Below are positions 1 through 63,255 of a stretch of 64,000 nt of DNA, piece by piece; the first letter of the stretch is position 1; every line of letters begins with the position of its first letter. The DNA is from Blastocystis sp. Blastoise (taxonomy: Eukaryota > Protista > Bigyra: Opalinata). The position numbers and the translations under genes are program-made. The DNA lies in assembly GCA_039096225.1 (NCBI GenBank), contig JBBPEB010000013.1, forward strand, positions 1,488,001 through 1,552,000, written 5' to 3'. The notes beneath the pieces were generated by a model. That model saw only the letters and a program-made list of their open reading frames with translations, had not been told where the DNA came from and made no database searches.

Positions 1-3000
1 TACAAATGAATGGGTAATTTCTCAATATAGTTCTATTATAGAAGATACATCTATTGAATCTATTAAAGATATTAGTTCTGAAACATATGCTACATTTACT
101 AAAGATATAAATAATAAAGCTTCTGTTACTATTCATTTTAATGAATTATACTTTATTAATTATATTAATTTAGAATTATCTTCTAATATTAATAGTGATG
201 TTACTATATCTATATTATCTAAACTTAATATAAATAATAAACTTTATTCTAATATATATTCTATTGAAACTACTTCTAATTCTTATAGTTTACAATTTAC
301 TAAGAATATTCTTATAAAAGATATTATTATTGAATTTACTTTTAATAATTGTGATACTATTAATCTTTATAATATTATATTTAATGGAAAGAAAGCTTCT
401 GAAAATGCTATGGTATTCTTTGTTCCTGAAAATGTTAATAAATGTGTTTATACTTCTGATATTATTGTTACTTATGTTAGTTTATGTACTCCTGATATTT
501 CTTATATGTTTACTGATATGAATAATGTATATCCATGTTTCAAATTCCCTAATTCAGATTTTGCTTATTATAATATTCCTTTAACTATTCATTATGTTAC
601 TGTTGATCAATATACATCTAATGTTGTTGTTAATAATTATCATAATGAATATTTAACTTTACGTGGAAATGATCTTAATTCTGAATTTGATACAATTAAA
701 TTTGTTAATTTTGAATGTAATGAAGATGCTGTTGGTACAGGTTATACTTTAAATAATAATGAAATTTTATTAAGTTTTACTTCATCTATTAATTCTAAAT
801 CTGATGGAAAAATAAAATTATGTTATTGTTTTAATAATGAAGTTTGTACTAAAGTATTAACATTATCTACTTATGAAGCTTCTATTAAATATGAACAATT
901 TACATTACATCTTTATGATATTACTAAGATTTCTACTATTGATCAATCATCTTTATCTGTTTATATTAAGAATGAACAAACATATGTTTTTGAAGGTATT
1001 GGTATTCATTCTTGTACTACTGAAGATTCTATTAATTGTGATCATATTAAATTTACAAAGAATTCATGTTTTGATAATAATAATGTTGTTGCTGTTACTA
1101 AGAATAGTGCTACTTATTCTTTTGATAAAGCTTATAACAGTAATATGTTATGTTATAAATATGCTAATTTAGATTATGTAAGTTCTTTTAATATTTATGA
1201 AAATATTCAAGTTCGTTCTGTAGAAATTATTTCTATATATCCTAAATATTTACGTGAAAATATTGAAAGTACATTATATTTACTTCATAATTCAATTATT
1301 AATAAAGATTCTATTGCTTTAACTAATAAAGAACATTCTTGTGATGATACAACAATTGAATATCATACTTTGAACCTTATTAATAATGATTTATATGCTA
1401 TTACTTCTGTAATTCTTAATGAAAATATTAATCGTATTTGTGTTAAATTATTAGATAATAATAATGCTTATGTTGTTGATCAATTTAATATTAATATTGG
1501 TTTTACTGATATTACATATTCTCCTTCTATTATAATTGCTAGACAAAATAGTGTTATTACTTTCTATAGTGATAATATTGCTCCTTTAAATAAAGTTAAA
1601 TTTGTTTTAAGTGAATCTTGTGAAGATGAATCTGTTATTGAACCAGTAAATGTATATTATAATAATAATAATAATCAATTACAAGTTAATGTTTTATTTA
1701 ATATTGGTTATTCTTCATTATCTGTATGTTATCTTGATAATGAAAATATTGGTTATCAATTATTATCTCAAAAATTACGTGTAATATCTATTACTGGTAT
1801 TAAAGATCGTACATTTGTAGTTAGACGTGTTCCTACTACAATTATGATTGAAGGTGAAGGATTTTCTAATCAAGATTCTATTGCTTGGATTAAATCTGAT
1901 TTATCATGTGATTTTATCTCTATATCTTCATTTACTACTGTTTCTAGTATAAATGATGAACATACTATTGTTACTTTTGATAATGTTATATTACAAAATA
2001 CAGGTATTTTATACAAAGGTTGTTATAAATTTGGTTCTTTAGATATTATTTATTCTATAGATAATACTTTATTATCTGTAAAAGATTTATTATCTATTGA
2101 ACCTACTGAATGGGTTGTTGGTTTAAATATTCCTTTTATAAATTCTCAACGTACAAATAAAATATCTGTTAATGGTGTATTATTAGGTAATGATATGATT
2201 AAATTTGCATATGAATCATGTTCTATTGATAATGAATTTGATAGACAATCATCAATAGTTAATAATGAAGTAGATAATACTTTATTATTTGTAAAAGATG
2301 GTCGTTATAAAGTTTGTTATAAATTTGAAAATGGTGATGAATGGTATGATATGACTTATTATAGTACTAATTCTATATATATGGATATTAAATCTTATTA
2401 TATTGAAAGTTCTGATAAGATTAATGATAGAATAATTGTTTTAACTCCTCAATCTCCTATTGTTACTGAAACTATTACATTAGTTGGTTCCCTTGAATAT
2501 CTTAATCAACCATATCAATTCTCATTTGTTTATATAAATGATGAATGTAATGAAAATTCTGTACATACTATTGATTCTATTAATGGTTATTCTATTACTT
2601 ATACTTTTAATGAAGCTATTGAAGATAAATATAAATTATGTTTCTATTATAATAATGAATGGAAATCTACATCAATTACTATTACTACAAAAGATCTTAA
2701 ACATATACATTATAGTGGTTTTACTGATACAATTTATGTTACATCTACTATTCCTGCTACTATTACTTTTGAAGGTATTAATATTGGTAATGGTGATTAT
2801 GCTAAATTTGTATTACCTAATTCTGATTGTAATGATGTTAATAATAATCTTGTAAGTTCATTTATTAATAATGAAAAGAAAGGTACTTTTGATTTATCTT
2901 CAATATATTATAAGAATACTTTATCTTTATGTTATAAATTTAAACAATATAATGATGAATTAGATCAATTTATTGAATATAATAACTTTACTCTTACTGT

Positions 3001-6000
3001 TGTATATATTAATGATGTATATATTAATTCTATATCAATTCATACTATGCAACATATACTTAAGAATGAAGAAGCTATATTTAAATTTACTGGTAATGGT
3101 TTATTACCTGAAGATCAATTCTATTTTGTATTACCAAATAATGATTGTAATATTGATAATAATAGTATAATTTATAATATGACTGAATCTCATGTAATTC
3201 CTATTACTATTAGTCAAGGATATGATGAATTAAATATTTGTTATATCTTTAAGAATTTAGTTGTTTATAAATTAGAAAATACTATTATTAAAGTTGTTAG
3301 TCTTGATTCTATTAGTCATAATGAATGGGTTTCATATATTTCTGTACCTAATCCTAATATGAAATTACCTAATGGTGATTCTAATATTCCTATTAGTATA
3401 TCTGGTACTTCACTTAATATTCATGATGAAACTATTAAATTTATACCTATTATTGAAAATTGTAATACATATATTTCTCTTATAAGTACTCTTGAAGGAT
3501 CTAATGATAATACTTCTATTATTAGTTATATATTTACTAATCCTACAACATATAAATTATGTTATAATCATAATTTCTATGGTTGGAGAGAATATGAAAA
3601 TATAACTATAAGTATTAATCCATTATCATTATCATCTACTACTGGTGAACAATATATATTTATTTCACCTAATCAAGTTTCTTATGATTTACCTATTAAT
3701 ATTAATGGAAATATATTATTATTTACTATTAATAATAAATATAAATTAGTAAAATCATCTCAAGATTGTGTTATTGATTCATTAAATGATGGTATAGAAA
3801 CTGGTTTAATAAATAATAATGAATATAATACTATTTTATCTCTTATTCCTAATGATTATTTATTACCTCAATATATATGTTTCCAAGTTGGTTTATCTAA
3901 AAATATTATTGTTGATGGTATTAGTATTATTCAACGTTCTATTTCTAGTATATCTCCTTTACAAAGTTTAGTTGGTGGTATTCCTGAATATACTGAATTT
4001 AAATTTATTGGATCTATCTCTGAAGGTGATTCTATTAAATTTATACAAGGTAATTCTAATTGTGATAGTACTAATGAAGAAGATATTATTACTCCTTATG
4101 TAACTCTTAGTAATGATAAATCTATTAGTGTTAAATTTAATAAAGGATATCTTGATGTAGCTGTTTGTTTTAAATTCTTTAATAAACAAGAACAATATAA
4201 ATTAGATTATGAACATATTAAATTATTTAAATTACAAGAAATTAATCCTCATATTGTTGTTAAGAGTAAGACATCTCGTATTGATTTAGATATTGAACCT
4301 CAATATGATTTATCTAATACAATTATACGTTTTGTACCTGAATCTTCTACTTGTGATAATTATCTTGATACAATTGATGATATAATTTCTTATAATAATG
4401 ATAATAATAATAATTATGTTAATATACAAAATATTCCTCGTACATTTGTTACTAATGAAGATTATAAAGTATGTATGAAATTAGTTAATATTGATAATTC
4501 TGATTATGTTATATATAATACTGATAATACTCGTTTCTCGTTACATGGTGTAAGAATTATACCTGAATATATTATTGGTTTATATATAAATAATGTTGAA
4601 ACTTTAACATTTACATATGAAGGATTAGTTAATGATAATGCTAAATTTGTACATTATACAAATGATGAAGATATTACATGTACTGATGAAAATGCTCTTG
4701 TTACTAATTCAACAAATACACTTGGTCAATTTAATATTATTTATAGAGAAGCTATTTTAACTCCTAGTAATGAATTTAGATTATGTTACCAATTTGCTAA
4801 TAGTGAATATTATAGATATAATGATATTAAATTACAAATATTCCCTGCTAATGGTAAATTAACAGTTGAAGAAATTGTATTTATTATGATTCATTCTATT
4901 GATTCTGATGATTTATTTACTATTATGAATAAGGCTTTAACTAATGATTTAGTTAGAGATGTAACTGATATTTATAATGCTACTAGAGAAACTATTTTAT
5001 CTCATCCTTCTTTAGCTACAAAGATTATTAATGGTTTACTTGTTGGTCCTGAAGGTTCTACACCTCTTGCTAACATTCAATATTCTTATGTATGTGAAGA
5101 AGTTGCTAAGTCTCTTGGTGAAACAGAAATAGCTACTATTGATAATATTTATGATGGTGCTAAAGCAATTGCTATTGTTTATAATCGTCCTTATTATGAT
5201 ATGTCTATACAACCTATAGTTTTCTTACGTAATATTATTTATTTACCTTCTTATGATTCAGATATCCAAAAATCAAAGGCTTTCTTAAGAGGTTGGAGAT
5301 CTATAGGTGAAATGTCTAATGAGGTTGAAGTTAAACCTGGTGATGAAAATGTATCTCTTAATTTTGTTGATGGTACAAATGCTACATTTAGTTATCCTTC
5401 TATTACTTCTTCTAAATATCAATTATTACAAGAAGATGCTTCTAATACTATTAAGGTCGTTTTAAGTGCTATTAATTGTTACATGGTTTCTACTTTACGT
5501 GAAGGTAAATGTTATTATGTAATAATTAATAATGATATTGATTATGTTTTCCCTCAAAGTAATCCTCCTACTTTAAGATATCCTAAACGATCTGATATTG
5601 ATACATCTTGTGTTAAGAAAGATAATGAAACTGAAGAATTTACTCAAATTTATGCTGGTACTGATTGTATTGTTACTTTAGGTGATGCTTCTTTAACATC
5701 TACTACTTTTGGTATTGTTGGTACTAATGATGAAACTCCTTCTATTGCTCCTACTCCAAGACCTAATGATATTACTAATATAATTATTATATTTATTATC
5801 ATTATTTTATTATTAACTTTAATTGTATTTATTGTAATTTTAACTTTCTATTGTAGACGTACTGGTCCTCTTCCTGATAAGAATGAAGATGCTATACAGA
5901 AACAACTTGAAGAACTTAAGAAACAAAGAATTATTTTACCTGTTGCTAAACAAGAAACTGTAGCTGAAACTGTAGTTATTGATCAATATGCTAGTTTTGA

Positions 6001-6796
6001 TGATGATTATCAATTATCATCTGCTAATCTTGCTAAATATGCTTATGATAAAGCTGCTCATTCTGCTGATTTAGCTTCTATTAATGCTGGTAATGTTGCT
6101 AATATACTCGAACAAAAGCCTATATCTGATATACAAACAAGTGACATAGCTGATCCTATTGAATTTAATCAATATGTTGCTCAATGTGTTGAAAAGTATC
6201 CTACTATCTATAAATTAGCTGAATCTGCTGCTAATAATGGTATAGATGCTGCTATTATAGATAAAGATCAAAAAGATATAGAAGTTGTTCCTATTATTCC
6301 TACTGAATCTATTGAAATCATAAATGATTCCACCATAGAAGTTAATCCTTCTGAAAATGAACCTGTTATGAATAGACCTATCGCTGTGGTTAATCGATCG
6401 AATGATGAACCCACTCCAATTTTAATTGGTGAAAGCCAACCTGTTAGAGATCAAAATGAAGTTGTAGTAGTTTCTCAAGAAGAACCTATTATAACATCAT
6501 TACCGCACGAACATCCTAATGTTCAACCTGCGTTTGATGAACAGGCTGCCGCTGAATTAGCTCATAATGCTGAAGAGAGCCGTCGTATTGCTATTCAAGC
6601 TGCTTCTGCTTCTCTTGAACAAGCTAATGTTGCTGATTCAATGAGCGATTCCTTATCTCTTCATAACAGTGAATATGGTGAAATATCAGATGATATTAAT
6701 AATTCTGTAGAAATTAATAATAACAATTCTGCTCCTGTACAAGTTGTCGAGTCTCCTTCTAGCTCTAATAATAAGAATCCTATTGCTGAGAATTAA
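1..6796 (+). CDS. 3' part (~2,260 aa visible, 5'-partial) of a duplicate copy of the giant surface protein gene
   Basis: The frame is open from base 2 (TNEWVISQ...) to TAA at 6796. The 410..6796 translation matches the C-terminus of the 22797..48095 ORF. The ATG at 410 is internal. Confidence 0.93.
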   Translation, partial: TNEWVISQYSSIIEDTSIESIKDISSETYATFTKDINNKASVTIHFNELYFINYINLELSSNINSDVTISILSKLNINNKLYSNIYSIETTSNSYSLQFTKNILIKDIIIEFTFNNCDTINLYNIIFNGKKASENAMVFFVPENVNKCVYTSDIIVTYVSLCTPDISYMFTDMNNVYPCFKFPNSDFAYYNIPLTIHYVTVDQYTSNVVVNNYHNEYLTLRGNDLNSEFDTIKFVNFECNEDAVGTGYTLNNNEILLSFTSSINSKSDGKIKLCYCFNNEVCTKVLTLSTYEASIKYEQFTLHLYDITKISTIDQSSLSVYIKNEQTYVFEGIGIHSCTTEDSINCDHIKFTKNSCFDNNNVVAVTKNSATYSFDKAYNSNMLCYKYANLDYVSSFNIYENIQVRSVEIISIYPKYLRENIESTLYLLHNSIINKDSIALTNKEHSCDDTTIEYHTLNLINNDLYAITSVILNENINRICVKLLDNNNAYVVDQFNINIGFTDITYSPSIIIARQNSVITFYSDNIAPLNKVKFVLSESCEDESVIEPVNVYYNNNNNQLQVNVLFNIGYSSLSVCYLDNENIGYQLLSQKLRVISITGIKDRTFVVRRVPTTIMIEGEGFSNQDSIAWIKSDLSCDFISISSFTTVSSINDEHTIVTFDNVILQNTGILYKGCYKFGSLDIIYSIDNTLLSVKDLLSIEPTEWVVGLNIPFINSQRTNKISVNGVLLGNDMIKFAYESCSIDNEFDRQSSIVNNEVDNTLLFVKDGRYKVCYKFENGDEWYDMTYYSTNSIYMDIKSYYIESSDKINDRIIVLTPQSPIVTETITLVGSLEYLNQPYQFSFVYINDECNENSVHTIDSINGYSITYTFNEAIEDKYKLCFYYNNEWKSTSITITTKDLKHIHYSGFTDTIYVTSTIPATITFEGINIGNGDYAKFVLPNSDCNDVNNNLVSSFINNEKKGTFDLSSIYYKNTLSLCYKFKQYNDELDQFIEYNNFTLTVVYINDVYINSISIHTMQHILKNEEAIFKFTGNGLLPEDQFYFVLPNNDCNIDNNSIIYNMTESHVIPITISQGYDELNICYIFKNLVVYKLENTIIKVVSLDSISHNEWVSYISVPNPNMKLPNGDSNIPISISGTSLNIHDETIKFIPIIENCNTYISLISTLEGSNDNTSIISYIFTNPTTYKLCYNHNFYGWREYENITISINPLSLSSTTGEQYIFISPNQVSYDLPININGNILLFTINNKYKLVKSSQDCVIDSLNDGIETGLINNNEYNTILSLIPNDYLLPQYICFQVGLSKNIIVDGISIIQRSISSISPLQSLVGGIPEYTEFKFIGSISEGDSIKFIQGNSNCDSTNEEDIITPYVTLSNDKSISVKFNKGYLDVAVCFKFFNKQEQYKLDYEHIKLFKLQEINPHIVVKSKTSRIDLDIEPQYDLSNTIIRFVPESSTCDNYLDTIDDIISYNNDNNNNYVNIQNIPRTFVTNEDYKVCMKLVNIDNSDYVIYNTDNTRFSLHGVRIIPEYIIGLYINNVETLTFTYEGLVNDNAKFVHYTNDEDITCTDENALVTNSTNTLGQFNIIYREAILTPSNEFRLCYQFANSEYYRYNDIKLQIFPANGKLTVEEIVFIMIHSIDSDDLFTIMNKALTNDLVRDVTDIYNATRETILSHPSLATKIINGLLVGPEGSTPLANIQYSYVCEEVAKSLGETEIATIDNIYDGAKAIAIVYNRPYYDMSIQPIVFLRNIIYLPSYDSDIQKSKAFLRGWRSIGEMSNEVEVKPGDENVSLNFVDGTNATFSYPSITSSKYQLLQEDASNTIKVVLSAINCYMVSTLREGKCYYVIINNDIDYVFPQSNPPTLRYPKRSDIDTSCVKKDNETEEFTQIYAGTDCIVTLGDASLTSTTFGIVGTNDETPSIAPTPRPNDITNIIIIFIIIILLLTLIVFIVILTFYCRRTGPLPDKNEDAIQKQLEELKKQRIILPVAKQETVAETVVIDQYASFDDDYQLSSANLAKYAYDKAAHSADLASINAGNVANILEQKPISDIQTSDIADPIEFNQYVAQCVEKYPTIYKLAESAANNGIDAAIIDKDQKDIEVVPIIPTESIEIINDSTIEVNPSENEPVMNRPIAVVNRSNDEPTPILIGESQPVRDQNEVVVVSQEEPIITSLPHEHPNVQPAFDEQAAAELAHNAEESRRIAIQAASASLEQANVADSMSDSLSLHNSEYGEISDDINNSVEINNNNSAPVQVVESPSSSNNKNPIAEN

Positions 6797-7176
6797 TGAA
6801 CTCATCATGTAGAATAATTTTTATTATTGTTTCTTAATCCTTTTCTATATATATTATCAATTCCTATTCTTTTATTTTCTATTTAAACCTCTTTATACTG
6901 TAATTCCCTATTCTTTCTATTTTTCTCATTTTATAAATATATATATATATATTTTTTTTTATAAATTATATTATACTGTTTTTATCTTAGTTCTTTTTAT
7001 TTACCCTTTATATTGTAATTCCCTTTTCATCTCTCTTTTTATTTATATATAAATATATATATATATGTATTGTTATATAAATATTTTATAAATAAATATA
7101 TATAATATATATATATATTATCATGTATAACTTCAATATCTCCTATATATTTAAAAAAAAAAAAAAATTAAAAAAA

Positions 7177-8126
7177 GTCATAGAAAAAAAAAATTAAATT
7201 AAAAAAAGGTCATAGAAAAAAAAAAATTTAAAAAAATATATATATATAGGAGAAATAATTGAAGATATTAATAATAAATTTAGAAAATAATGATGCTATA
7301 TTATTAAAGATTATTATCATGAATTGTTAAATCCGGAATAACTCTTCATGATATATATTCTATATATTTATATTTATATATATATGTTTAAGATTTAGTT
7401 TATGAATTATATATTATGTAATGGTCTTCTTATAATTTAATATGTTAAGTATATGTATACTGTGTATTTAATTATTTCTAGATTATTTATATGAATGTAT
7501 AATTCTAATAGCTTTTTCTTATATATATATATATATATATATTTAAATATATGTATATATAATTGTATTTTTTTCTTTTTTTTAAAAAAGAATTATATCT
7601 TTTTAATAATTTTTTAATATTTTTAGTATCATTATTTATATATATTTTTATTATGTCTTTATATAATTATTCAATATTTGTTGTTATATATTATGTATAT
7701 ATATATATATTTATTATATATTTATTATATATATATTTATTATATATTTATATATTATGTATATATTTATATATTTTTATTATGTTGAGATATCATTATG
7801 TTGAGATATCATTAAGTTGAATATCTTATCTTATATTTATTTTTTATATCTTTTGTATTATATTCTTTTTTATGTCTAAAATCGTATTATAAGACAGGGT
7901 TCTTGTATAATATAGTTTTAGCTTCAAAAGAAATAATGTTTCAGGTTTTATGATATTTATCTATTCATAGTTTATATATAAATTATTCTTGTTGCATCAA
8001 TAATTATATATAGATGATTTAAAGAAATGTAGATATCATAAATATCCATATTCCTATAGAAAAAAAAAATTTAATAATCCCATAGAAAAAAAAAAGTTAA
8101 ATAACTCTCCATAGAAAAAAAAAATC
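7177..8126. repeat. Five dispersed (C/T)ATAG-A(10-11) motifs in two clusters (7177-7226, 8053-8124), mirrored in the right arm
   Basis: gtcatagaaaaaaaaaa occurs twice; cctatag, cccatag and tccatag each precede an A-run. Confidence 0.6.
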
Positions 8127-8739
8127 TATATGATATATATAGTTACTATGTGAATAGTATTATATATATATGTATAGGCGGTTCCTAAATCCTTTCTGTA
8201 ATTTTCCCTCTTCTCCTTTTTATACTTCCAAATAGTTTAAGATTATATAGATGCAATAATCTTATTCTATTTTCATATATATTAGTTTTTTTTTTATAAA
8301 TAAATAATTTATATATATTTTGTATTATTTATTAATACAATATATATATATATATTATTTTTATTCATATTTATACTTATATTTTTATATTTATACATAT
8401 ATATAATGTAGTTTTATATTTTGTTTATGGAATTTTTTTATATGTTTTGCTTTTACTCCATATATATTATATAATAAGATTGTTCTTCTTTATATAATAA
8501 TATGTCAGTATTTATTTTTATGTAGTTTTTATATTTTATAGTTAAGTTAGTTAAAAACTGACTTTTAATAAAGAGAATATTTATAATTATTTATATTATC
8601 TCTTTTTCTTTTGATTGATTCTGTATTATTATGTATATTATGTATTATATTATTATATCGATCAAATGATAATGAATATATATTTATAAAATAATTTATA
8701 AATATATAAAGTTATAAATTTAAAAAAAAAAAAAAATTA

Positions 8740-9194
8740 AAAAAAATTAAAAGAAAAAAATATCGTATATATTTTTTATATTTATATTCATTTATTTTTA
8801 TTTATTATTTATTTATTTATTTATATAGTTGCCTTGCGTTTCCATTATAACTTAGAGAAAAAAAAAATTAAAAAAAATTAAAAGAAAAAAAAATATCGTA
8901 TATATTTATATTTGTATTCATTTATATTTATTTATATATATACTTGCCTTGCGTTCCTACTAGATTTTAAACAAAAAAATCATTAAAAAATTAAAATTAA
9001 AAGAAAAAAAATATCTTGCCTTGCGTTCCTACTAGATTTTAAACAAAAAATTAATCAAAAGATTAATCAAAAAAATAAAATTAAAAGAAAAAAAATATCT
9101 TGCCTTGGGTTACTATTAAATTTTAAACAAAAAAATTAATCAAAAAAAAAATCAAAGAAAAAAAAAATTAAAAAAAATTAAAAAATAAAAAAAA

Positions 9195-9230
<36 letters not shown>

Positions 9231-9250
9231 ATTTTATAGTGTCGTTGCCT
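8740..9250. repeat. Array of 4-5 degenerate ~70-85-bp units (A-tract-GAAAAAAAATATC|TTGCCTTG(C/G)GTT...), some with intron-like inserts
   Basis: TTGCCTTGCGTT/TTGCCTTGGGTT at 8829, 8944, 9016 and 9100, and a TGTCGTTGCC variant at 9240. The core cctactagattttaaacaaaaaa is repeated. Confidence 0.88.
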
Positions 9251-11833
9251 GACAAAAAAAAAATCAAAAAAAAAAAAATATGTCGTCCTTATGTGTGTTT
9301 TCCTTTGTATACTTTCTATTTTGTCAGGTGCCTAGTTGATAACAATAAAAAATTCCATAACAAATAATAAACTATTTTTTTGTATTATATATATTATAAG
9401 TATATTTATAAATGTATCTATGAATAATTGTCTGATTTATTAATTTGTTTTGTTTATATGAACTATGTTTTTGAAATGAAAATTTATTTTATAAGTATAT
9501 ACACTGGTGTATAGCTTTTTGTCTTTTATACCAAGATTCCTCGTAGATTTATACAAAATATATATATATATATATTTTTTTTGTTTTTTTTAAATATCAA
9601 TCGAGATAATTTATATTAAAAATAATATTTTTTTTGAGTGCTTTTATAGAAAAAGATTTCAGTATATAAACTTGTGTAAAAGAAGACTTTTTTTGTTCTT
9701 TTTTATTTTTTCAGTTGTATTCATAAAATATTATTAATTAAAAGTTTATTATACACTGCATAAAAACAAAAGAAGATAATTATGACATAAATATGAAATA
9801 TTGTTAACTTAAATTTTTATAATTTCCGTTGAAGATTTAATATTTGTCAAAATCAATTGAATAATATTTTATGCAAGTATTTTAAACAAAATAAATATAT
9901 TAAAGAGAATATATGAGAAAATTATTTTATCATTTTGCAATTGTCTATTTATATGAGTAATTCTTTCTTGTTTATTAAAAATAATCATTGTATAGTTCAT
10001 TATATTATATTTATTATAATAAATAGATTTTTCTCTTTTTATACAGTTTTTCAATCAGTTTATACATAAAAAATAAACTTCTCTAAAATTACTTTATTTT
10101 ATTTTATTTAAAGAATTTCTTTTGATTTCCTTAATTTTATTTAAATTTGTTATAAATTAAAAAAATTTAATATTTTAAGTTTATCAAGTTGATTATTTTT
10201 CATTTATTTTCAATATATTAGTTATATCAGAATGTATATATGACTTTATATTAGTAAATATTTTAATATTTATTTTATATACAAATATTTTATCAGTAAT
10301 TATGTTTCTTTCATTTATTTTTAGCATTCATAGGTGTCACAAAAAGTTTTAAAATTTTATTTCAGTTGAATTAGTCTCTTTAAAAAGTATATTAATATGA
10401 ACTATAATGATGTTGTTTCATTTTTATTTTATTTATTTAGATTATAATTGATTAAGATGTTTAGAATTGTTTTTATGATAATGATAGATTATTTCAAAAC
10501 AAAAACAAAAACAAAAAAAATCAAAGCAAAAAAAGATGAGAATGAGAGACAGTCATTTTTGTATATATTAATTATTATTTTTTATTATTTATTTATTTTA
10601 TTTTATTAAATATTTTTAATACTTTATGGCTGTTTATTAGTCTTTAAATAGTATTTTAAATAAACATAAGATTTTCTTCCTATTTATTTTTTATGTATTA
10701 TATATAATTATTTTTATTATTTTTATTAATATTATTTTGAATATATTAAATAATATTATTTTATATAATATTTTTGTTTTTAATTTATTCTTTTACATTT
10801 TTTAATATAGATTTATATGTATAAGTTTTATAATATTTATTCTATTTATTGTTTATATAGTATTACTGGATTACTTGAACAAATATCTGAAGATTTATTA
10901 CTACATGTTATTGTATATAAATATTTTATTATTATTACTTTTTATTATTTTTAAATATATATATATATTTTAATAATAATATTAAATTTATAATATGTTT
11001 TTTTATATAATATATTATTCTATATATAATAATATATACTATTTATATATAGTTTCTTTATGATAATAGAAATAAGATTATTTTATTTTATTCTATCGGT
11101 AAAGACATAAAATGGTTTATTCCTTTTATTAAAAGTATTTAAAGAATAAGTATATCAATGAATACTTTACAAATAGATTATTCTTATTTTTTTGTATATA
11201 TATATATATATTACCATTATTATATATATTTAAATCTTATTATTGTATATTTAATACTAGTTTTATTATTATTGTATTTATTATATAGATAGATATGAAT
11301 ATAGATATAGGTAGAATTTCTTTCGACTGTAATAAAAGTGTATATTTCTATAATATCTGAATTATCTATTACGATCTCATTTTAATTGTGATTTATATCA
11401 AATAAAAAATATTATTATAAACGTATATATATATATATATATATTGATAATATTGATAATATATTTATATTATTATATATAGCTATTATAGATGTTTAAG
11501 TATCATTAAAAGAATGTAGTGAAAAAGTGATGATGAACAAACAAAAGATCTCCTTCTTCTAGTTCATTTCTTTTAGGATTCAACATACTATTATGTATAT
11601 TATTAAATATATATTACTATTATTATTCTTTATATATAACCATTTATATTGTTTTATATAATAAAATCCATTATAACTCTATCTATCTATAGTTATATAT
11701 TTATTAAAGTAAATACAGAGATATTATTTATACATATTAAGTATAGAATAAATAGTATTTTGAATAAACAAACAGAATTGAAGATTAATATATATTATTT
11801 GCTTTCTGGTACTACTATTTCTCCCACAGTATA

Positions 11834-12216
<383 letters not shown>

Positions 12217-13652: not shown

Positions 13653-13700
13653 AATTCAAAAAAGCATAAAGAGAGACTACAATTTTATATCTTTGACTAT

Positions 13701-17418: not shown

Positions 17419-17807
<389 letters not shown>

Positions 17808-20389
17808 TATACTGTGGGAGAAATAGTAGTACCAGAAAGCAAATAATATATATTAATCTTCAATTCTGTTTGTTTATTCAAAATACTATTTATTCTATAC
17901 TTAATATGTATAAATAATATCTCTGTATTTACTTTAATAAATATATAACTATAGATAGATAGAGTTATAATGGATTTTATTATATAAAACAATATAAATG
18001 GTTATATATAAAGAATAATAATAGTAATATATATTTAATAATATACATAATAGTATGTTGAATCCTAAAAGAAATGAACTAGAAGAAGGAGATCTTTTGT
18101 TTGTTCATCATCACTTTTTCACTACATTCTTTTAATGATACTTAAACATCTATAATAGCTATATATAATAATATAAATATATTATCAATATTATCAATAT
18201 ATATATATATATATATACGTTTATAATAATATTTTTTATTTGATATAAATCACAATTAAAATGAGATCGTAATAGATAATTCAGATATTATAGAAATATA
18301 CACTTTTATTACAGTCGAAAGAAATTCTACCTATATCTATATTCATATCTATCTATATAATAAATACAATAATAATAAAACTAGTATTAAATATACAATA
18401 ATAAGATTTAAATATATATAATAATGGTAATATATATATATATATACAAAAAAATAAGAATAATCTATTTGTAAAGTATTCATTGATATACTTATTCTTT
18501 AAATACTTTTAATAAAAGGAATAAACCATTTTATGTCTTTACCGATAGAATAAAATAAAATAATCTTATTTCTATTATCATAAAGAAACTATATATAAAT
18601 AGTATATATTATTATATATAGAATAATATATTATATAAAAAAACATATTATAAATTTAATATTATTATTAAAATATATATATATATTTAAAAATAATAAA
18701 AAGTAATAATAATAAAATATTTATATACAATAACATGTAGTAATAAATCTTCAGATATTTGTTCAAGTAATCCAGTAATACTATATAAACAATAAATAGA
18801 ATAAATATTATAAAACTTATACATATAAATCTATATTAAAAAATGTAAAAGAATAAATTAAAAACAAAAATATTATATAAAATAATATTATTTAATATAT
18901 TCAAAATAATATTAATAAAAATAATAAAAATAATTATATATAATACATAAAAAATAAATAGGAAGAAAATCTTATGTTTATTTAAAATACTATTTAAAGA
19001 CTAATAAACAGCCATAAAGTATTAAAAATATTTAATAAAATAAAATAAATAAATAATAAAAAATAATAATTAATATATACAAAAATGACTGTCTCTCATT
19101 CTCATCTTTTTTTGCTTTGATTTTTTTTGTTTTTGTTTTTGTTTTGAAATAATCTATCATTATCATAAAAACAATTCTAAACATCTTAATCAATTATAAT
19201 CTAAATAAATAAAATAAAAATGAAACAACATCATTATAGTTCATATTAATATACTTTTTAAAGAGACTAATTCAACTGAAATAAAATTTTAAAACTTTTT
19301 GTGACACCTATGAATGCTAAAAATAAATGAAAGAAACATAATTACTGATAAAATATTTGTATATAAAATAAATATTAAAATATTTACTAATATAAAGTCA
19401 TATATACATTCTGATATAACTAATATATTGAAAATAAATGAAAAATAATCAACTTGATAAACTTAAAATATTAAATTTTTTTAATTTATAACAAATTTAA
19501 ATAAAATTAAGGAAATCAAAAGAAATTCTTTAAATAAAATAAAATAAAGTAATTTTAGAGAAGTTTATTTTTTATGTATAAACTGATTGAAAAACTGTAT
19601 AAAAAGAGAAAAATCTATTTATTATAATAAATATAATATAATGAACTATACAATGATTATTTTTAATAAACAAGAAAGAATTACTCATATAAATAGACAA
19701 TTGCAAAATGATAAAATAATTTTCTCATATATTCTCTTTAATATATTTATTTTGTTTAAAATACTTGCATAAAATATTATTCAATTGATTTTGACAAATA
19801 TTAAATCTTCAACGGAAATTATAAAAATTTAAGTTAACAATATTTCATATTTATGTCATAATTATCTTCTTTTGTTTTTATGCAGTGTATAATAAACTTT
19901 TAATTAATAATATTTTATGAATACAACTGAAAAAATAAAAAAGAACAAAAAAAGTCTTCTTTTACACAAGTTTATATACTGAAATCTTTTTCTATAAAAG
20001 CACTCAAAAAAAATATTATTTTTAATATAAATTATCTCGATTGATATTTAAAAAAAACAAAAAAAATATATATATATATATATTTTGTATAAATCTACGA
20101 GGAATCTTGGTATAAAAGACAAAAAGCTATACACCAGTGTATATACTTATAAAATAAATTTTCATTTCAAAAACATAGTTCATATAAACAAAACAAATTA
20201 ATAAATCAGACAATTATTCATAGATACATTTATAAATATACTTATAATATATATAATACAAAAAAATAGTTTATTATTTGTTATGGAATTTTTTATTGTT
20301 ATCAACTAGGCACCTGACAAAATAGAAAGTATACAAAGGAAAACACACATAAGGACGACATATTTTTTTTTTTTGATTTTTTTTTTGTC

Positions 20390-20855
20390 AGGCAACGACA
20401 TTTTTTTTATTTTTTAATTTTTTTTAATTTTTTTTTTCTTTGATTTTTTTTTTGATTAATTTTTTTGTTTAAAATTTAATAGTAACCCAAGGCAAGTATA
20501 TATAAATATATATAAATGAATATAAATATAAATATATAAGATATTTTTTTTCTTTTAATTTTATTTTTTTGATTAATCTTTTGATTAATTTTTTGTTTAA
20601 AATCTAGTAGGAACGCAAGGCAAGATATTTTTTTTCTTTTAATTTTAATTTTTTAATGATTTTTTTGTTTAAAATCTAGTAGGAACGCAAGGCAAGATAT
20701 TTTTTTTTCTTTTAATTTTTTTTAATTTTTTTTTTCTCTAAGTTATAATGGAAACGCAAGGCAAGTATATAAATAAATAAATAAATAATAAATAAAAATA
20801 AATGAATATAAATATAAAAAATATATACGATATTTTTTTTCTTTTAATTTTTTTT
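20390..20855. repeat. Mirror copy of the TTGCC repeat array with a different insert pattern
   Basis: GGCAA cores at 20391, 20491, 20619, 20691 and 20760. Confidence 0.88.
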
Positions 20856-22796
20856 AATTTTTTTTTTTTTTAAATTTATAACTTTATATATTTATAAATT
20901 ATTTTATAAATATATATTCATTATCATTTGATCGATATAATAATATAATACATAATATACATAATAATACAGAATCAATCAAAAGAAAAAGAGATAATAT
21001 AAATAATTATAAATATTCTCTTTATTAAAAGTCAGTTTTTAACTAACTTAACTATAAAATATAAAAACTACATAAAAATAAATACTGACATATTATTATA
21101 TAAAGAAGAACAATCTTATTATATAATATATATGGAGTAAAAGCAAAACATATAAAAAAATTCCATAAACAAAATATAAAACTACATTATATATATGTAT
21201 AAATATAAAAATATAAGTATAAATATGAATAAAAATAATATATATATATATATTGTATTAATAAATAATACAAAATATATATAAATTATTTATTTATAAA
21301 AAAAAAACTAATATATATGAAAATAGAATAAGATTATTGCATCTATATAATCTTAAACTATTTGGAAGTATAAAAAGGAGAAGAGGGAAAATTACAGAAA
21401 GGATTTAGGAACCGCCTATACATATATATATAATACTATTCACATAGTAACTATATATATCATATAGATTTTTTTTTTCTATGGAGAGTTATTTAACTTT
21501 TTTTTTTCTATGGGATTATTAAATTTTTTTTTTCTATAGGAATATGGATATTTATGATATCTACATTTCTTTAAATCATCTATATATAATTATTGATGCA
21601 ACAAGAATAATTTATATATAAACTATGAATAGATAAATATCATAAAACCTGAAACATTATTTCTTTTGAAGCTAAAACTATATTATACAAGAACCCTGTC
21701 TTATAATACGATTTTAGACATAAAAAAGAATATAATACAAAAGATATAAAAAATAAATATAAGATAAGATATTCAACTTAATGATATCTCAACATAATGA
21801 TATCTCAACATAATAAAAATATATAAATATATACATAATATATAAATATATAATAAATATATATATAATAAATATATAATAAATATATATATATATACAT
21901 AATATATAACAACAAATATTGAATAATTATATAAAGACATAATAAAAATATATATAAATAATGATACTAAAAATATTAAAAAATTATTAAAAAGATATAA
22001 TTCTTTTTTAAAAAAAAGAAAAAAATACAATTATATATACATATATTTAAATATATATATATATATATATAAAAAAAAGCTATTAGAATTATACATTCAT
22101 ATAAATAATCTAGAAATAATTAAATACACAGTATACATATACTTAACATATTAAATTATAAGAAGACCATTACATAATATATAATTCATAAACTAAATCT
22201 TAAACATATATATATAAATATAAATATATAGAATATATATCATGAAGAGTTATTCCGGATTTAACAATTCATGATAATAATCTTTAATAATATAGCATCA
22301 TTATTTTCTAAATTTATTATTAATATCTTCAATTATTTCTCCTATATATATATATTTTTTTAAATTTTTTTTTTTCTATGACCTTTTTTTAATTTAATTT
22401 TTTTTTTTCTATGACTTTTTTTAATTTTTTTTTTTTTTTTAAATATATAGGAGATATTGAAGTTATACATGATAATATATATATATATTATATATATTTA
22501 TTTATAAAATATTTATATAACAATACATATATATATATATTTATATATAAATAAAAAGAGAGATGAAAAGGGAATTACAATATAAAGGGTAAATAAAAAG
22601 AACTAAGATAAAAACAGTATAATATAATTTATAAAAAAAAATATATATATATATATTTATAAAATGAGAAAAATAGAAAGAATAGGGAATTACAGTATAA
22701 AGAGGTTTAAATAGAAAATAAAAGAATAGGAATTGATAATATATATAGAAAAGGATTAAGAAACAATAATAAAAATTATTCTACATGATGAGTTCA

Positions 22797-25700
22797 TTAA
22801 TTCTCAGCAATAGGATTCTTATTATTAGAGCTAGAAGGAGACTCGACAACTTGTACAGGAGCAGAATTGTTATTATTAATTTCTACAGAATTATTAATAT
22901 CATCTGATATTTCACCATATTCACTGTTATGAAGAGATAAGGAATCGCTCATTGAATCAGCAACATTAGCTTGTTCAAGAGAAGCAGAAGCAGCTTGAAT
23001 AGCAATACGACGGCTCTCTTCAGCATTATGAGCTAATTCAGCGGCAGCCTGTTCATCAAACGCAGGTTGAACATTAGGATGTTCGTGCGGTAATGATGTT
23101 ATAATAGGTTCTTCTTGAGAAACTACTACAACTTCATTTTGATCTCTAACAGGTTGGCTTTCACCAATTAAAATTGGAGTGGGTTCATCATTCGATCGAT
23201 TAACCACAGCGATAGGTCTATTCATAACAGGTTCATTTTCAGAAGGATTAACTTCTATGGTGGAATCATTTATGATTTCAATAGATTCAGTAGGAATAAT
23301 AGGAACAACTTCTATATCTTTTTGATCTTTATCTATAATAGCAGCATCTATACCATTATTAGCAGCAGATTCAGCTAATTTATAGATAGTAGGATACTTT
23401 TCAACACATTGAGCAACATATTGATTAAATTCAATAGGATCAGCTATGTCACTTGTTTGTATATCAGATATAGGCTTTTGTTCGAGTATATTAGCAACAT
23501 TACCAGCATTAATAGAAGCTAAATCAGCAGAATGAGCAGCTTTATCATAAGCATATTTAGCAAGATTAGCAGATGATAATTGATAATCATCATCAAAACT
23601 AGCATATTGATCAATAACTACAGTTTCAGCTACAGTTTCTTGTTTAGCAACAGGTAAAATAATTCTTTGTTTCTTAAGTTCTTCAAGTTGTTTCTGTATA
23701 GCATCTTCATTCTTATCAGGAAGAGGACCAGTACGTCTACAATAGAAAGTTAAAATTACAATAAATACAATTAAAGTTAATAATAAAATAATGATAATAA
23801 ATATAATAATTATATTAGTAATATCATTAGGTCTTGGAGTAGGAGCAATAGAAGGAGTTTCATCATTAGTACCAACAATACCAAAAGTAGTAGATGTTAA
23901 AGAAGCATCACCTAAAGTAACAATACAATCAGTACCAGCATAAATTTGAGTAAATTCTTCAGTTTCATTATCTTTCTTAACACAAGATGTATCAATATCA
24001 GATCGTTTAGGATATCTTAAAGTAGGAGGATTACTTTGAGGGAAAACATAATCAATATCATTATTAATTATTACATAATAACATTTACCTTCACGTAAAG
24101 TAGAAACCATGTAACAATTAATAGCACTTAAAACGACCTTAATAGTATTAGAAGCATCTTCTTGTAATAATTGATATTTAGAAGAAGTAATAGAAGGATA
24201 ACTAAATGTAGCATTTGTACCATCAACAAAATTAAGAGATACATTTTCATCACCAGGTTTAACTTCAACCTCATTAGACATTTCACCTATAGATCTCCAA
24301 CCTCTTAAGAAAGCCTTTGATTTTTGGATATCTGAATCATAAGAAGGTAAATAAATAATATTACGTAAGAAAACTATAGGTTGTATAGACATATCATAAT
24401 AAGGACGATTATAAACAATAGCAATTGCTTTAGCACCATCATAAATATTATCAATAGTAGCTATTTCTGTTTCACCAAGAGACTTAGCAACTTCTTCACA
24501 TACATAAGAATATTGAATGTTAGCAAGAGGTGTAGAACCTTCAGGACCAACAAGTAAACCATTAATAATCTTTGTAGCTAAAGAAGGATGAGATAAAATA
24601 GTTTCTCTAGTAGCATTATAAATATCAGTTACATCTCTAACTAAATCATTAGTTAAAGCCTTATTCATAATAGTAAATAAATCATCAGAATCAATAGAAT
24701 GAATCATAATAAATACAATTTCTTCAACTGTTAATTTACCATTAGCAGGGAATATTTGTAATTTAATATCATTATATCTATAATATTCACTATTAGCAAA
24801 TTGGTAACATAATCTAAATTCATTACTAGGAGTTAAAATAGCTTCTCTATAAATAATATTAAATTGACCAAGTGTATTTGTTGAATTAGTAACAAGAGCA
24901 TTTTCATCAGTACATGTAATATCTTCATCATTTGTATAATGTACAAATTTAGCATTATCATTAACTAATCCTTCATATGTAAATGTTAAAGTTTCAACAT
25001 TATTTATATATAAACCAATAATATATTCAGGTATAATTCTTACACCATGTAACGAGAAACGAGTATTATCAGTATTATATATAACATAATCAGAATTATC
25101 AATATTAACTAATTTCATACATACTTTATAATCTTCATTAGTAACAAATGTACGAGGAATATTTTGTATATTAACATAATTATTATTATTATCATTATTA
25201 TAAGAAATTATATCATCAATTGTATCAAGATAATTATCACAAGTAGAAGATTCAGGTACAAAACGTATAATTGTATTAGATAAATCATATTGAGGTTCAA
25301 TATCTAAATCAATACGAGATGTCTTACTCTTAACAACAATATGAGGATTAATTTCTTGTAATTTAAATAATTTAATATGTTCATAATCTAATTTATATTG
25401 TTCTTGTTTATTAAAGAATTTAAAACAAACAGCTACATCAAGATATCCTTTATTAAATTTAACACTAATAGATTTATCATTACTAAGAGTTACATAAGGA
25501 GTAATAATATCTTCTTCATTAGTACTATCACAATTAGAATTACCTTGTATAAATTTAATAGAATCACCTTCAGAGATAGATCCAATAAATTTAAATTCAG
25601 TATATTCAGGAATACCACCAACTAAACTTTGTAAAGGAGATATACTAGAAATAGAACGTTGAATAATACTAATACCATCAACAATAATATTTTTAGATAA

Positions 25701-28700
25701 ACCAACTTGGAAACATATATATTGAGGTAATAAATAATCATTAGGAATAAGAGATAAAATAGTATTATATTCATTATTATTTATTAAACCAGTTTCTATA
25801 CCATCATTTAATGAATCAATAACACAATCTTGAGATGATTTTACTAATTTATATTTATTATTAATAGTAAATAATAATATATTTCCATTAATATTAATAG
25901 GTAAATCATAAGAAACTTGATTAGGTGAAATAAATATATATTGTTCACCAGTAGTAGATGATAATGATAATGGATTAATACTTATAGTTATATTTTCATA
26001 TTCTCTCCAACCATAGAAATTATGATTATAACATAATTTATATGTTGTAGGATTAGTAAATATATAACTAATAATAGAAGTATTATCATTAGATCCTTCA
26101 AGAGTACTTATAAGAGAAATATATGTATTACAATTTTCAATAATAGGTATAAATTTAATAGTTTCATCATGAATATTAAGTGAAGTACCAGATATACTAA
26201 TAGGAATATTAGAATCACCATTAGGTAATTTCATATTAGGATTAGGTACAGAAATATATGAAACCCATTCATTATGACTAATAGAATCAAGACTAACAAC
26301 TTTAATAATAGTATTTTCTAATTTATAAACAACTAAATTCTTAAAGATATAACAAATATTTAATTCATCATATCCTTGACTAATAGTAATAGGAATTACA
26401 TGAGATTCAGTCATATTATAAATTATACTATTATTATCAATATTACAATCATTATTTGGTAATACAAAATAGAATTGATCTTCAGGTAATAAACCATTAC
26501 CAGTAAATTTAAATATAGCTTCTTCATTCTTAAGTATATGTTGCATAGTATGAATTGATATAGAATTAATATATACATCATTAATATATACAACAGTAAG
26601 AGTAAAGTTATTATATTCAATAAATTGATCTAATTCATCATTATATTGTTTAAATTTATAACATAAAGATAAAGTATTCTTATAATATATTGAAGATAAA
26701 TCAAAAGTACCTTTCTTTTCATTATTAATAAATGAACTTACAAGATTATTATTAACATCATTACAATCAGAATTAGGTAATACAAATTTAGCATAATCAC
26801 CATTACCAATATTAATACCTTCAAAAGTAATAGTAGCAGGAATAGTAGATGTAACATAAATTGTATCAGTAAAACCACTATAATGTATATGTTTAAGATC
26901 TTTTGTAGTAATAGTAATTGATGTAGATTTCCATTCATTATTATAATAGAAACATAATTTATATTTATCTTCAATAGCTTCATTAAAAGTATAAGTAATA
27001 GAATAACCATTAATAGAATCAATAGTATGTACAGAATTTTCATTACATTCATCATTTATATAAACAAATGAGAATTGATATGGTTGATTAAGATATTCAA
27101 GGGAACCAACTAATGTAATAGTTTCAGTAACAATAGGAGATTGAGGAGTTAAAACAATTATTCTATCATTAATCTTATCAGAACTTTCAATATAATAAGA
27201 TTTAATATCCATATATATAGAATTAGTACTATAATAAGTCATATCATACCATTCATCACCATTTTCAAATTTATAACAAACTTTATAACGACCATCTTTT
27301 ACAAATAATAAAGTATTATCTACTTCATTATTAACTATTGATGATTGTCTATCAAATTCATTATCAATAGAACATGATTCATATGCAAATTTAATCATAT
27401 CATTACCTAATAATACACCATTAACAGATATTTTATTTGTACGTTGAGAATTTATAAAAGGAATATTTAAACCAACAACCCATTCAGTAGGTTCAATAGA
27501 TAATAAATCTTTTACAGATAATAAAGTATTATCTATAGAATAAATAATATCTAAAGAACCAAATTTATAACAACCTTTGTATAAAATACCTGTATTTTGT
27601 AATATAACATTATCAAAAGTAACAATAGTATGTTCATCATTTATACTAGAAACAGTAGTAAATGAAGATATAGAGATAAAATCACATGATAAATCAGATT
27701 TAATCCAAGCAATAGAATCTTGATTAGAAAATCCTTCACCTTCAATCATAATTGTAGTAGGAACACGTCTAACTACAAATGTACGATCTTTAATACCAGT
27801 AATAGATATTACACGTAATTTTTGAGATAATAATTGATAACCAATATTTTCATTATCAAGATAACATACAGATAATGAAGAATAACCAATATTAAATAAA
27901 ACATTAACTTGTAATTGATTATTATTATTATTATAATATACATTTACTGGTTCAATAACAGATTCATCTTCACAAGATTCACTTAAAACAAATTTAACTT
28001 TATTTAAAGGAGCAATATTATCACTATAGAAAGTAATAACACTATTTTGTCTAGCAATTATAATAGAAGGAGAATATGTAATATCAGTAAAACCAATATT
28101 AATATTAAATTGATCAACAACATAAGCATTATTATTATCTAATAATTTAACACAAATACGATTAATATTTTCATTAAGAATTACAGAAGTAATAGCATAT
28201 AAATCATTATTAATAAGGTTCAAAGTATGATATTCAATTGTTGTATCATCACAAGAATGTTCTTTATTAGTTAAAGCAATAGAATCTTTATTAATAATTG
28301 AATTATGAAGTAAATATAATGTACTTTCAATATTTTCACGTAAATATTTAGGATATATAGAAATAATTTCTACAGAACGAACTTGAATATTTTCATAAAT
28401 ATTAAAAGAACTTACATAATCTAAATTAGCATATTTATAACATAACATATTACTGTTATAAGCTTTATCAAAAGAATAAGTAGCACTATTCTTAGTAACA
28501 GCAACAACATTATTATTATCAAAACATGAATTCTTTGTAAATTTAATATGATCACAATTAATAGAATCTTCAGTAGTACAAGAATGAATACCAATACCTT
28601 CAAAAACATATGTTTGTTCATTCTTAATATAAACAGATAAAGATGATTGATCAATAGTAGAAATCTTAGTAATATCATAAAGATGTAATGTAAATTGTTC

Positions 28701-31700
28701 ATATTTAATAGAAGCTTCATAAGTAGATAATGTTAATACTTTAGTACAAACTTCATTATTAAAACAATAACATAATTTTATTTTTCCATCAGATTTAGAA
28801 TTAATAGATGAAGTAAAACTTAATAAAATTTCATTATTATTTAAAGTATAACCTGTACCAACAGCATCTTCATTACATTCAAAATTAACAAATTTAATTG
28901 TATCAAATTCAGAATTAAGATCATTTCCACGTAAAGTTAAATATTCATTATGATAATTATTAACAACAACATTAGATGTATATTGATCAACAGTAACATA
29001 ATGAATAGTTAAAGGAATATTATAATAAGCAAAATCTGAATTAGGGAATTTGAAACATGGATATACATTATTCATATCAGTAAACATATAAGAAATATCA
29101 GGAGTACATAAACTAACATAAGTAACAATAATATCAGAAGTATAAACACATTTATTAACATTTTCAGGAACAAAGAATACCATAGCATTTTCAGAAGCTT
29201 TCTTTCCATTAAATATAATATTATAAAGATTAATAGTATCACAATTATTAAAAGTAAATTCAATAATAATATCTTTTATAAGAATATTCTTAGTAAATTG
29301 TAAACTATAAGAATTAGAAGTAGTTTCAATAGAATATATATTAGAATAAAGTTTATTATTTATATTAAGTTTAGATAATATAGATATAGTAACATCACTA
29401 TTAATATTAGAAGATAATTCTAAATTAATATAATTAATAAAGTATAATTCATTAAAATGAATAGTAACAGAAGCTTTATTATTTATATCTTTAGTAAATG
29501 TAGCATATGTTTCAGAACTAATATCTTTAATAGATTCAATAGATGTATCTTCTATAATAGAACTATATTGAGAAATTACCCATTCATTTGTATCAATAGT
29601 AGTAAAAGTAGAACACATAGATTCACCTAAACCACTACCAATAAATGATAACATATTATTATAATTTATAACAATAGGTTTATCTGAAGTAATAGATTGA
29701 AGAGTAGAAGCATAAAGTTTAATATCTTTATATTCATGAACATATTGATTATCAAATTTATAACATAATTTATAATATCCATTATTAGATATAGGTAATG
29801 TAATAATAATCTTAGAATCTTTTACTTTAGAATAATTATCAATAGAACCACCACAGTCTAGATAATCTTCAGGTAAAAATATAGCAAAATCATTATCACT
29901 AATACCAGTACCAAATAATGTAACTTCAATAGGAATATTAGAAACTATAGCATCATTTGATTCAATAGAATTAATTTCAATAGCAGATAAAGTAATATCA
30001 TTGAAAAGAGTCCATTTATTATTAATATTAATACATAATTTATAATTATAACCAGCTTTAGTAAATATAACATTACCAGTATTATTTTCACTAATAACTA
30101 AGTATGAATTACCAGAAACACTATTAGCTAATATACAATCTATATCTGATGAGACACCACTCTCAACAAACATAAATTCTTGATTAGGATTAGTAATAGG
30201 TTTATTATTATTATCAAGAATATAGAATATCTTTTCAACACCAACAATAGCAGTATTATTAGAAAGAGAACCTATATCATCAATTGTAGATATAGTCTTA
30301 ACAAATACTTGAATATTATAACTAGCATGGAATGATTTCTCATTAGGATATTTAACACATAAATATTTCATTCCAGAAGTTATTAACCATGTACTAAAAG
30401 TTAATTTAGTATTATCATCAATATCTTTTCGTAATATAATACCAGTATCTAAATCATTTTCACATAATATATTTTCAGAAACAAATTTAACACGAGTTTC
30501 TTCTATATATTCACCAATAAGAATAAATGTATTTCTAGTATTAACATATACTTCATTAGGAGTAATACTAGCAAATCCACTAACTTTTATAGTAGATATC
30601 ATTAATTTATAATCATCATCTTTATGAGTCTTTAAACATATTCTTAAATTATCACTTATATCATAAATAGAAGCAATAATATGAGAATCATCATTAATTG
30701 TTATTTCATAATTATTTATAGAATTAATACGAGCAAATAAATTATTATCATTAGAATTACAATCATCACCAGAAAGTAAAAATTTAACATTAGAATTAGC
30801 TAAACCATAACCAATAAAAGTAATATCAGTAGGAGAACCAGCATAAAGTTCTTTAGGAATAATATCTTCATAATGAGTAGAACTTATACTAAGAGTAATA
30901 GAATCATAATATATAGGTATATCTGATAAAGTCTTAAATGTATAACATAAATGATAAACTTTATTATTATCATTAGATGTAAAATTATAATAACCAAATA
31001 ATTTATTATCTATAATTGATTCATAAGATATTTCATCTTCATTATTAATACTATTACAATCATTACCTAAAATAAATTTAGCTATATCTCCTTTATTAAG
31101 ACCACCACCAATGAATCTTATAGGAGTTTCTACTTCATATGAAGCAAAAGAAGGAGATATACTAACAATACGACTAATTGTAAGATCATAAATAGTATTA
31201 ATCTTTGTATTATCATTATAAATATAACATAATTTATAATGATAATAATTAATATCATTAAATAATACAGTCATAATAATTTCATTTGTATTTTCATAAT
31301 AACGATCATTATTATTATTATCTGAAAGAGATAATTTTAAGCTACCATAGAATCTTAATCCATCTTCACAAGTATGTTCAATAGGTACAAAATATGCTTT
31401 ATCATTAATTTCAGGACTATTTACAGACAATATAATATCATATTCAGTATTCCAAGGAATTATAGAAGGAGTTAAGCCATTTACAGAATAATTAATAACT
31501 TCAACTTTCATTGCACCACCAATAAATAAGAAGTAATTATCATAAATAGATTTATATTGTGAGAAATAATAACAAGTAGCATATATACCATATTCGGTAA
31601 AGATAGGTTCAATAGACATATTACTATCTATTGTATATATAGTATTATCTATAGTATTACATTCAGATAATTTCATATTTTCATGATAAGGTATAAATTT

Positions 31701-62800: not shown

Positions 62801-63255
62801 TCGATATAGTTCCTTCTTTATCTCGACCTCCTAAACATCATTCTCTTCGATTACTTCCTAAGGAAGATAGTGATGAAGAATATCAATTACATTCTAAATC
62901 AACAGGACATAAAGCGTTGTATATTCTTATTTATATATATATAAAGAAAATTCTTTCTTTCTTTCTTCTATAAAATATATATTATATTTATATACTTTTT
63001 TTCTATATATATATATATATATATATTAGTTCTATGTTTAAACGTGATGGAACAGTATTGAAATGGTGTCATCAATGTAAAGCACGTAAACGTGATGTAA
63101 TTGACTGCAAGAATTGTGGTAAAAACCGACATGGATCAGGTAATAGGTATCTTATATATTTATTATATATTTATTTAACTATTATCTATCTTTTATATTT
63201 GAATACTTTTATATATAATAAATAAAATAATAAATAAATATAAACTAATTTATGT

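Follow-up and report, generated by a model that had tools for sequence, protein, structure and literature searches.

A stretch of 64,000 nucleotides from contig C16 of the tortoise isolate Blastocystis sp. Rus-B ("Blastoise"; G000:C16:1488001-1552000, hereafter "the window") contains the centre of a palindrome of around 103 kb in total, in which two inverted arms of about 50.4 kb each enclose a spacer of 2,329 bp. This spacer is the interior of a hAT transposon, and the terminal inverted repeats (TIRs) of the same transposon, each around 1.1 kb long, form the innermost part of the two arms. With somewhat better than even confidence, we favor an origin of the palindrome by a one-off fold-back or template-switch inverted duplication that was seeded by these TIRs and is represented correctly in the assembly. 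The window lies in the middle of its 2.16-Mb contig, the genome has a size of 33.3 Mb and is divided into 33 contigs (34 in the version that was searched), and the palindrome, which goes unmentioned in the genome paper (PMC10690189), is described here from the assembled sequence.

Within the window, the left arm (1-13652) pairs with positions 15982-29592 of the right arm around the spacer at 13653-15981, and the giant inverted repeat that a preliminary description of this DNA had reported is thus real in the sequence. The same description had proposed to extend the sequence leftwards until the arm ends; with 50 kb of left and 10 kb of right flanking DNA added before self-comparison, this end was reached at position -36755 (negative coordinates lie left of window position 1), and the arms turned out to be larger than had been noted. 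The whole left arm spans -36755..13652 (C16:1451245-1501652; 50,408 bp, with 1..13652 inside the window) and the whole right arm 15982..66372 (C16:1503982-1554372; 50,391 bp, with 15982..64000 inside the window). The outer ends of the two arms coincide to the base and are sharp (C16:1451244/1451245 and 1554372/1554373), with no residual homology between the flanks beyond them (local alignment score 42, compared to a mean of 33 and a maximum of 51 for shuffled sequence). No element sequence was found within 3 kb of either outer border, and the borders share no 8-mer, no remnant of a target-site duplication, and no scorable microhomology at the junction. Genome-wide, the arm sequence is present in only two copies, while the spacer is unique. 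A dispersed repeat of around 110 bp at the arm edges was considered as the terminus of a miniature inverted-repeat transposable element and rejected, given that its matches are overlapping AT-only sequence at many offsets, i.e., low complexity.

The transposon at the palindrome center covers approximately 12558..17076 on the reverse strand (about 4.5 kb) with termini TTAACCAGAC.../...GTCTGGTTAA and TIRs of 1,095 bp, its limits being placed there because homology to the terminus of a related element on contig C3 (see below) starts at 12558. Reading in the direction of its gene, the right TIR (15982..17076, reverse strand) holds the upstream region, exon 1 with an AT-hook (about 16231-16429), and most of intron 1 (15971-16230). 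The unique interior (13653..15981, reverse strand) follows with a zinc-finger/D1 exon (15401-15970, acceptor at 15970), the exons for the DDE and hAT C-terminal parts (13704-15091, interrupted by an intron near 14209-14403), and the stop codon (13701-13703), all on the same strand. In the left TIR (12558..13652, forward strand), the promoter region and the AT-hook exon are repeated in inverted orientation, the exon at 13205-13402. The edges of the spacer thus lie 48 bp past the stop codon and 11 bp ahead of the acceptor of the zinc-finger (second) exon, at the distances described before. Since the TIRs carry the promoter and the AT-hook exon, the second copy of the 5' end (13205-13402, forward strand) is directed against the 3' end of the transposase gene, and this convergent arrangement could yield antisense or hairpin RNA. 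Besides the two termini in the window, no further copies of this terminus exist in the genome.

The assignment of the central gene to the hAT superfamily rests on a profile of its family. Its exons were searched singly, and a joined sequence was taken only from the public annotated model (KAK8807322.1; 654 aa; Blastocystis sp. "Blastoise"). In Pfam, the window exons matched zf-BED (E 0.005) and Dimer_Tnp_hAT (E 0.12), both failing the Pfam cut-offs; the latter domain scored E 0.012 in the paralogue on contig C26 and E 1.3e-10 in more distant members of the family. Searches of the exons as single sequences against solved structures gave no match, and Hermes was reached by the family profile only. 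Exhaustive searching by HMMER, using the DDE exon as the query, led to the public 654-aa model and distant relatives, and in a 12-sequence alignment the residues D226, D293, E606, C317, H320, R378, and W379 (window protein numbering) are conserved. The profile of this family aligns almost end to end with Hermes (6dww, 2bw3, 4d1q; E 6.6e-10), and the conserved residues pair with the Hermes catalytic residues and its CxxH and RW motifs. Because of this alignment and the preservation of these residues, the predicted product of the central gene is identified as a hAT transposase, in agreement with the preliminary description, and the enzyme looks catalytically intact.

The preliminary description had further proposed a transposase-centered fold-back amplicon in which the edges of the spacer were set by the rearrangement itself or by the hairpin chemistry of the transposase. 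While the hAT element at the center bears out one half of this proposal, the other half does not survive a comparison with close paralogues of the central gene, which are found on contigs C3 and C26 (49% identity in the DDE exon) as well as C24 and C28 (37%). The C3 copy is a 4.8-kb element with TIRs of about 1,081-1,082 bp at 99.7% identity around a 2.6-kb interior, and it likewise has an AT-hook exon in both TIRs and its promoter inside them. The inner edges of its TIRs fall in the same places as those in the window, one directly before the zinc-finger exon and the other 67 bp past the stop codon. The termini of this element are TTGACCAGAC.../...GTCTGGTCAA, and a perfect 8-bp direct repeat, ATCGAATT, stands just outside of them. 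Such an 8-bp direct repeat is the hallmark of a hAT insertion. The first 60 bp or so of the C3 TIR are clearly homologous to the window from 12558 onwards (TTAACCAGACAAAAG...), where the similarity ends, and no inverted repeat extends beyond the ends of the C3 element. Because C3 shows the same TIR layout with an 8-bp duplication and no larger palindrome, the spacer edges in the window are the inner edges of native TIRs, i.e., part of the element's own design and not a product of rearrangement.

The remaining paralogues show related architectures. On C26, the full upstream repeat has been kept, but its inverted partner beside the stop codon measures 86 bp, with the same inner edge. Related long-TIR elements were found at G000:C24:249914-263284, with an insertion of around 9 kb between the DDE and zinc-finger parts, and at G000:C28:361084-401586, with the inverted TIR partner 39 kb away. 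These two are 99% identical to each other and contain nested insertions, and since C24 and C28 hold such closely matching copies, the family has evidently moved recently. The distance between the inverted partners is 12, 39, and 19 kb in C24, C28, and C26, respectively, at least partly due to nested insertions. At the expected site of the hAT C-terminal exon of the C28 element, we found a repeat of around 1.1 kb (G000:C28:398143-399257) with a central 160-bp perfect hairpin, which is present in at least 15 copies of 81-97% identity on contigs C10, C15, C16, C23, C28, and C34. The idea that the transposase family might form a system for amplifying surface genes finds no support among these copies: C3, the one paralogue for which the outer flanks were read, has no palindrome around it, and C26 shows just its 86-bp inverted repeat.

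The direct flanks of the element are informative about what happened at the locus in the window. Its flanking 8-mers, TTATTAAA on the left and TTTAATAA on the right, are reverse complements of each other, and the direct target-site duplication is lost. Because these 8-mers are reverse complements rather than a direct duplication, it appears that an inverted copy of one flank has taken the place of the other original flank, and the absence of a target-site duplication from the window copy is then expected. These same 8-mers argue against the idea that the transposon simply inserted into the center of a pre-existing palindrome, as its position exactly on the symmetry axis might suggest, given that a hAT element would have left a direct 8-bp duplication there. 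A chance strike on the exact axis is unlikely as well, and we find this explanation hardly credible.

Under the TIR-seeded origin that we favor, the hAT element would have inserted first, with its promoter and AT-hook exon inside the TIRs. Breakage of the DNA or stalling of a fork beside the element would then have exposed one TIR as single-stranded DNA, which could have paired with the other TIR in the same strand, leaving the 2.3-kb interior as a loop that stayed single-copy. The paired TIR would have primed synthesis outward along the opposite flank, by which about 49.3 kb of non-coding sequence, the gene of around 11,500 codons, small open reading frames (ORFs), and the Hsp70 gene (see below) would have been copied in inverted orientation. 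At a distance of 49.3 kb, the copy would have been rejoined to the chromosome, either by another switch or by end-joining. We infer the order of these events, the break, the template switch, and the reconnection at the second junction, together with the correctness of the assembly. Two features of the locus are those of a fold-back product: the spacer between the arms is single-copy, and the inverted homology at its edges predates the duplication, as seen in the TIR layout of C3. In human inverted duplications, the spacer has a median length of 3.4 kb and is in some cases bounded by opposed Alu or LINE copies (PMC3907307), and in yeast, inverted repeats near a break channel its repair into the fold-back route (PMC6103520).

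Several points weigh against this origin. Fold-back normally gives rise to dicentric chromosomes or terminal deletions, and an interstitial product needs an extra step. At the outer junction, where the copy would have been reconnected, neither scorable microhomology nor a target-site remnant is seen. The duplication is known from this one genome, and neither exact look-ups of the center exons in public assemblies nor a metagenome scan with the outer end of the arm returned an independent contig. Finally, the sequence is a Nanopore R9/Flye --meta assembly of a diploid, in which the differences between the arms may be heterozygous sites in a segment that was falsely doubled.

This last point amounts to an explanation of its own, namely, that a single 50-kb copy per haplotype was traversed twice by Flye via the TIRs, or that a heterozygous rearrangement was flattened into one path, with heterozygous sites subsequently fixed differently by polishing in the two arms. 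The Rus-B genome was assembled from ligation Nanopore R9 reads of a xenic culture using Flye 2.9.2 --meta and polished with racon, PolyPolish, and POLCA, and its k-mer signal is strongly diploid (PMC10690189), all of which would accommodate such an error. The arms differ in 68 places, comprising 37 isolated substitutions, indels that are mostly found in microsatellites, and five blocks of 44-52 bp. Arm identity is 99.8-99.9%, or about 99.9% counting substitutions, and a substitution difference of around 0.07% is plausible as heterozygosity. Among the 37 substitutions are 16 transitions and 17 A/T changes, many of the latter in AT-rich stretches; the differences cluster in the outer 8 kb of the arms, and 11.5 kb has none. 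Because of the 16 transitions, indels of repeats that stay in frame, and two substitutions in Hsp70 that are both synonymous, the arm differences look like biological variants and not like homopolymer noise alone. They are no proof of two copies, since heterozygous sites of a diploid could have been fixed differently by polishing. Variants specific to the left arm include a 46-bp block at 8897, a 45-bp block at 9195, and an indel at 12746. The largest structural differences of the inner arms are three blocks of 44-46 bp that alternate between presence and absence in the two arms (8897-9240 compared to 20400-20696), inside a TTGCC-based repeat array, as well as microsatellite length changes at 12024-12069.

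Against an assembly artefact stands, first, that the two arms terminate at an identical base in the interior of a 2.16-Mb contig, each continuing into a different unique flank. Moreover, a 4.5-kb element is easily spanned by Nanopore reads, and a spurious connection between the arms would not be backed by such reads. Chimeras of template and complement strands in Nanopore sequencing give palindromes without a spacer, and not ones centered on a natural repeat. The libraries involved no amplification step, since the Nanopore library was made by ligation and the Illumina library was PCR-free (PMC10690189). The chimera of whole-genome amplification that had been raised as a serious alternative in the preliminary description therefore falls away, because no such amplification was used. 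Taken together, we judge an assembly error at this locus to be unlikely. Users of this genome should check the copy number of the 50-kb segment before reading gene counts or synteny from it.

If the assembly is correct, the palindrome could instead have originated from the hAT enzyme itself, by a cut at the element end that led to a flank hairpin or to sister-chromatid or reversed-ends transposition, and not from host repair at the TIRs. The enzyme looks intact by its predicted catalytic residues, the palindrome junction cannot be distinguished from the terminus of the element, and a cut at this terminus would be a natural initiating break. In maize, alternative transposition of hAT elements creates inverted duplications of 0.3-3.2 Mb, and sister-chromatid transposition of Ac leaves an excision footprint at the center and places the element ends, along with an 8-bp duplication, at the outer border (bioRxiv 10.1101/2020.01.07.897926). 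The pattern in Blastocystis is the reverse of this, with an intact element at the center and neither element sequence nor an 8-bp duplication at the outer borders, and a replicated flank hairpin would give a palindrome without spacer and without central element. We consider an origin by transposition quite unlikely for these reasons, though the transposase could have supplied the initiating cut at the element end in a TIR-seeded event. The presence of a transposase at the center of a palindrome does not by itself imply transposase chemistry.

From the outside inward, each arm carries an Hsp70 gene, a few small ORFs, a gene of around 11,500 codons, and around 6 kb of very AT-rich non-coding DNA. 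The Hsp70 gene is of the cytosolic type and intronless, its start lies 253 bp from the arm end, and both copies are intact. The giant gene is present once per arm, as the preliminary description had proposed: the left copy (-27802..6793, forward strand, of which 1..6793 is the 3' part inside the window) is a single open frame of 11,532 codons, and the right copy (22800..57406, reverse strand) is split into two open frames at 22800-48248 and 48218-57406. This split is due to a 1-bp difference in a T run at 48242, compared to -18638 in the left arm (C16:1469363), and is either a real pseudogenizing frameshift or a Nanopore homopolymer error, the latter being in line with an artefactual doubling of the segment. 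The predicted giant protein begins with a hydrophobic N-terminus, contains F5/8-type-C domains, and crosses the membrane with one helix around 340 residues before the C-terminus. Because of these features, it can be viewed as a putative type I membrane protein for which "surface protein" is a fair label. Its C-terminal 2,000 residues had no homologue within the length limits of the search.

Beyond the arms, the left flank carries a methyltransferase-like gene and the right flank an alpha-L-fucosidase-like gene. A canonical three-unit heat-shock element (GAAnnTTCnnGAA) and a two-unit one (-36806..-36766) precede the left Hsp70 copy, just outside the end of the left arm, and the right flank has just a two-unit motif at 66388. 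Judging from these motifs, it may be the left Hsp70 copy that sits in its native promoter context. The nearest Hsp70 in our searches (90% identity) is encoded on a 7,159-bp metagenome contig (ENA ERZ8810629 NODE_5781), where it adjoins genes of bacterial type (HD domain, Spore_YtfJ, ribosomal L28). This contig is probably chimeric and useless for synteny.

As a further alternative, the palindrome might be an older structure that has been maintained, with the Hsp70/surface-gene pair kept near-identical by gene conversion between the arms and under selection for two copies. The near-identity of the arms, the concentration of their differences in the outer 8 kb, the 11.5 kb without any, the two intact Hsp70 copies, and the heat-shock-element-like motifs that each copy has in its own unique flank would all fit such a history. 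However, no residual homology is left past the arm ends, and one copy of the giant gene is frameshifted. We give little credence to this reading as the explanation for the locus, though it does not conflict with a TIR-seeded origin of the palindrome.

Provided that the assembly is right, this locus is a clean natural example from a gut protist of the long inverted ends of a transposon seeding a 100-kb palindrome, which doubles a surface protein of around 11,500 residues along with an Hsp70 gene. It would link the architecture of a transposon to gene amplification via a route familiar chiefly from work on yeast, on cancer, and on constitutional rearrangements in humans. It is a distinctly speculative extension of this view, and one that we consider improbable at present, that long-TIR hAT elements are recurrent seeds for the palindromic duplication of neighboring genes, with the break possibly made by their own transposase and the doubled surface or stress genes subsequently kept alike by conversion.

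Compared to known systems, the central element resembles hAT transposons of the Hermes/Ac type in its DDE triad, CxxH and RW motifs, putative C-terminal hAT region, candidate zinc finger on the N-terminal side, and, in the C3 copy, 8-bp duplication. The TIRs of hAT elements usually measure roughly 10-25 bp. In contrast, those described here are around 1.1 kb long and contain the promoter, the AT-hook first exon, and most of intron 1, which results in a second, convergent 5' end. As in maize Ac/Ds alternative transposition, neighboring genes lie in a large inverted duplication that is physically linked to a hAT element, but here the element is central and the outer borders are clean; the signature of sister-chromatid transposition was looked for and is absent. 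Origin-dependent inverted-repeat amplification (ODIRA; PMC4689423, PMC10766183) similarly generates inverted copies by template switching at short inverted repeats at the replication fork. Its products are interstitial inverted triplications (PMC4689423), whereas the Blastocystis locus has two arm copies and not three in direct-inverted-direct order. The locus also resembles fold-back inverted duplications seeded by nearby inverted repeats, as in constitutional inverted duplications of humans (PMC3907307) and single-strand annealing of inverted repeats near a break in yeast (PMC6103520), which have large inverted arms, a single-copy spacer of a few kb, and edges at pre-existing inverted homology. 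Unlike in these cases, the proposed seeds are the 1.1-kb TIRs of one transposon, and the duplication lies within the chromosome, where its 49-kb arms border on unique DNA at either side rather than on a terminal deletion or translocation. We thus classify the palindrome as a further instance of a rearrangement type that is already known, probably seeded by a hAT element whose long TIRs are unusual.

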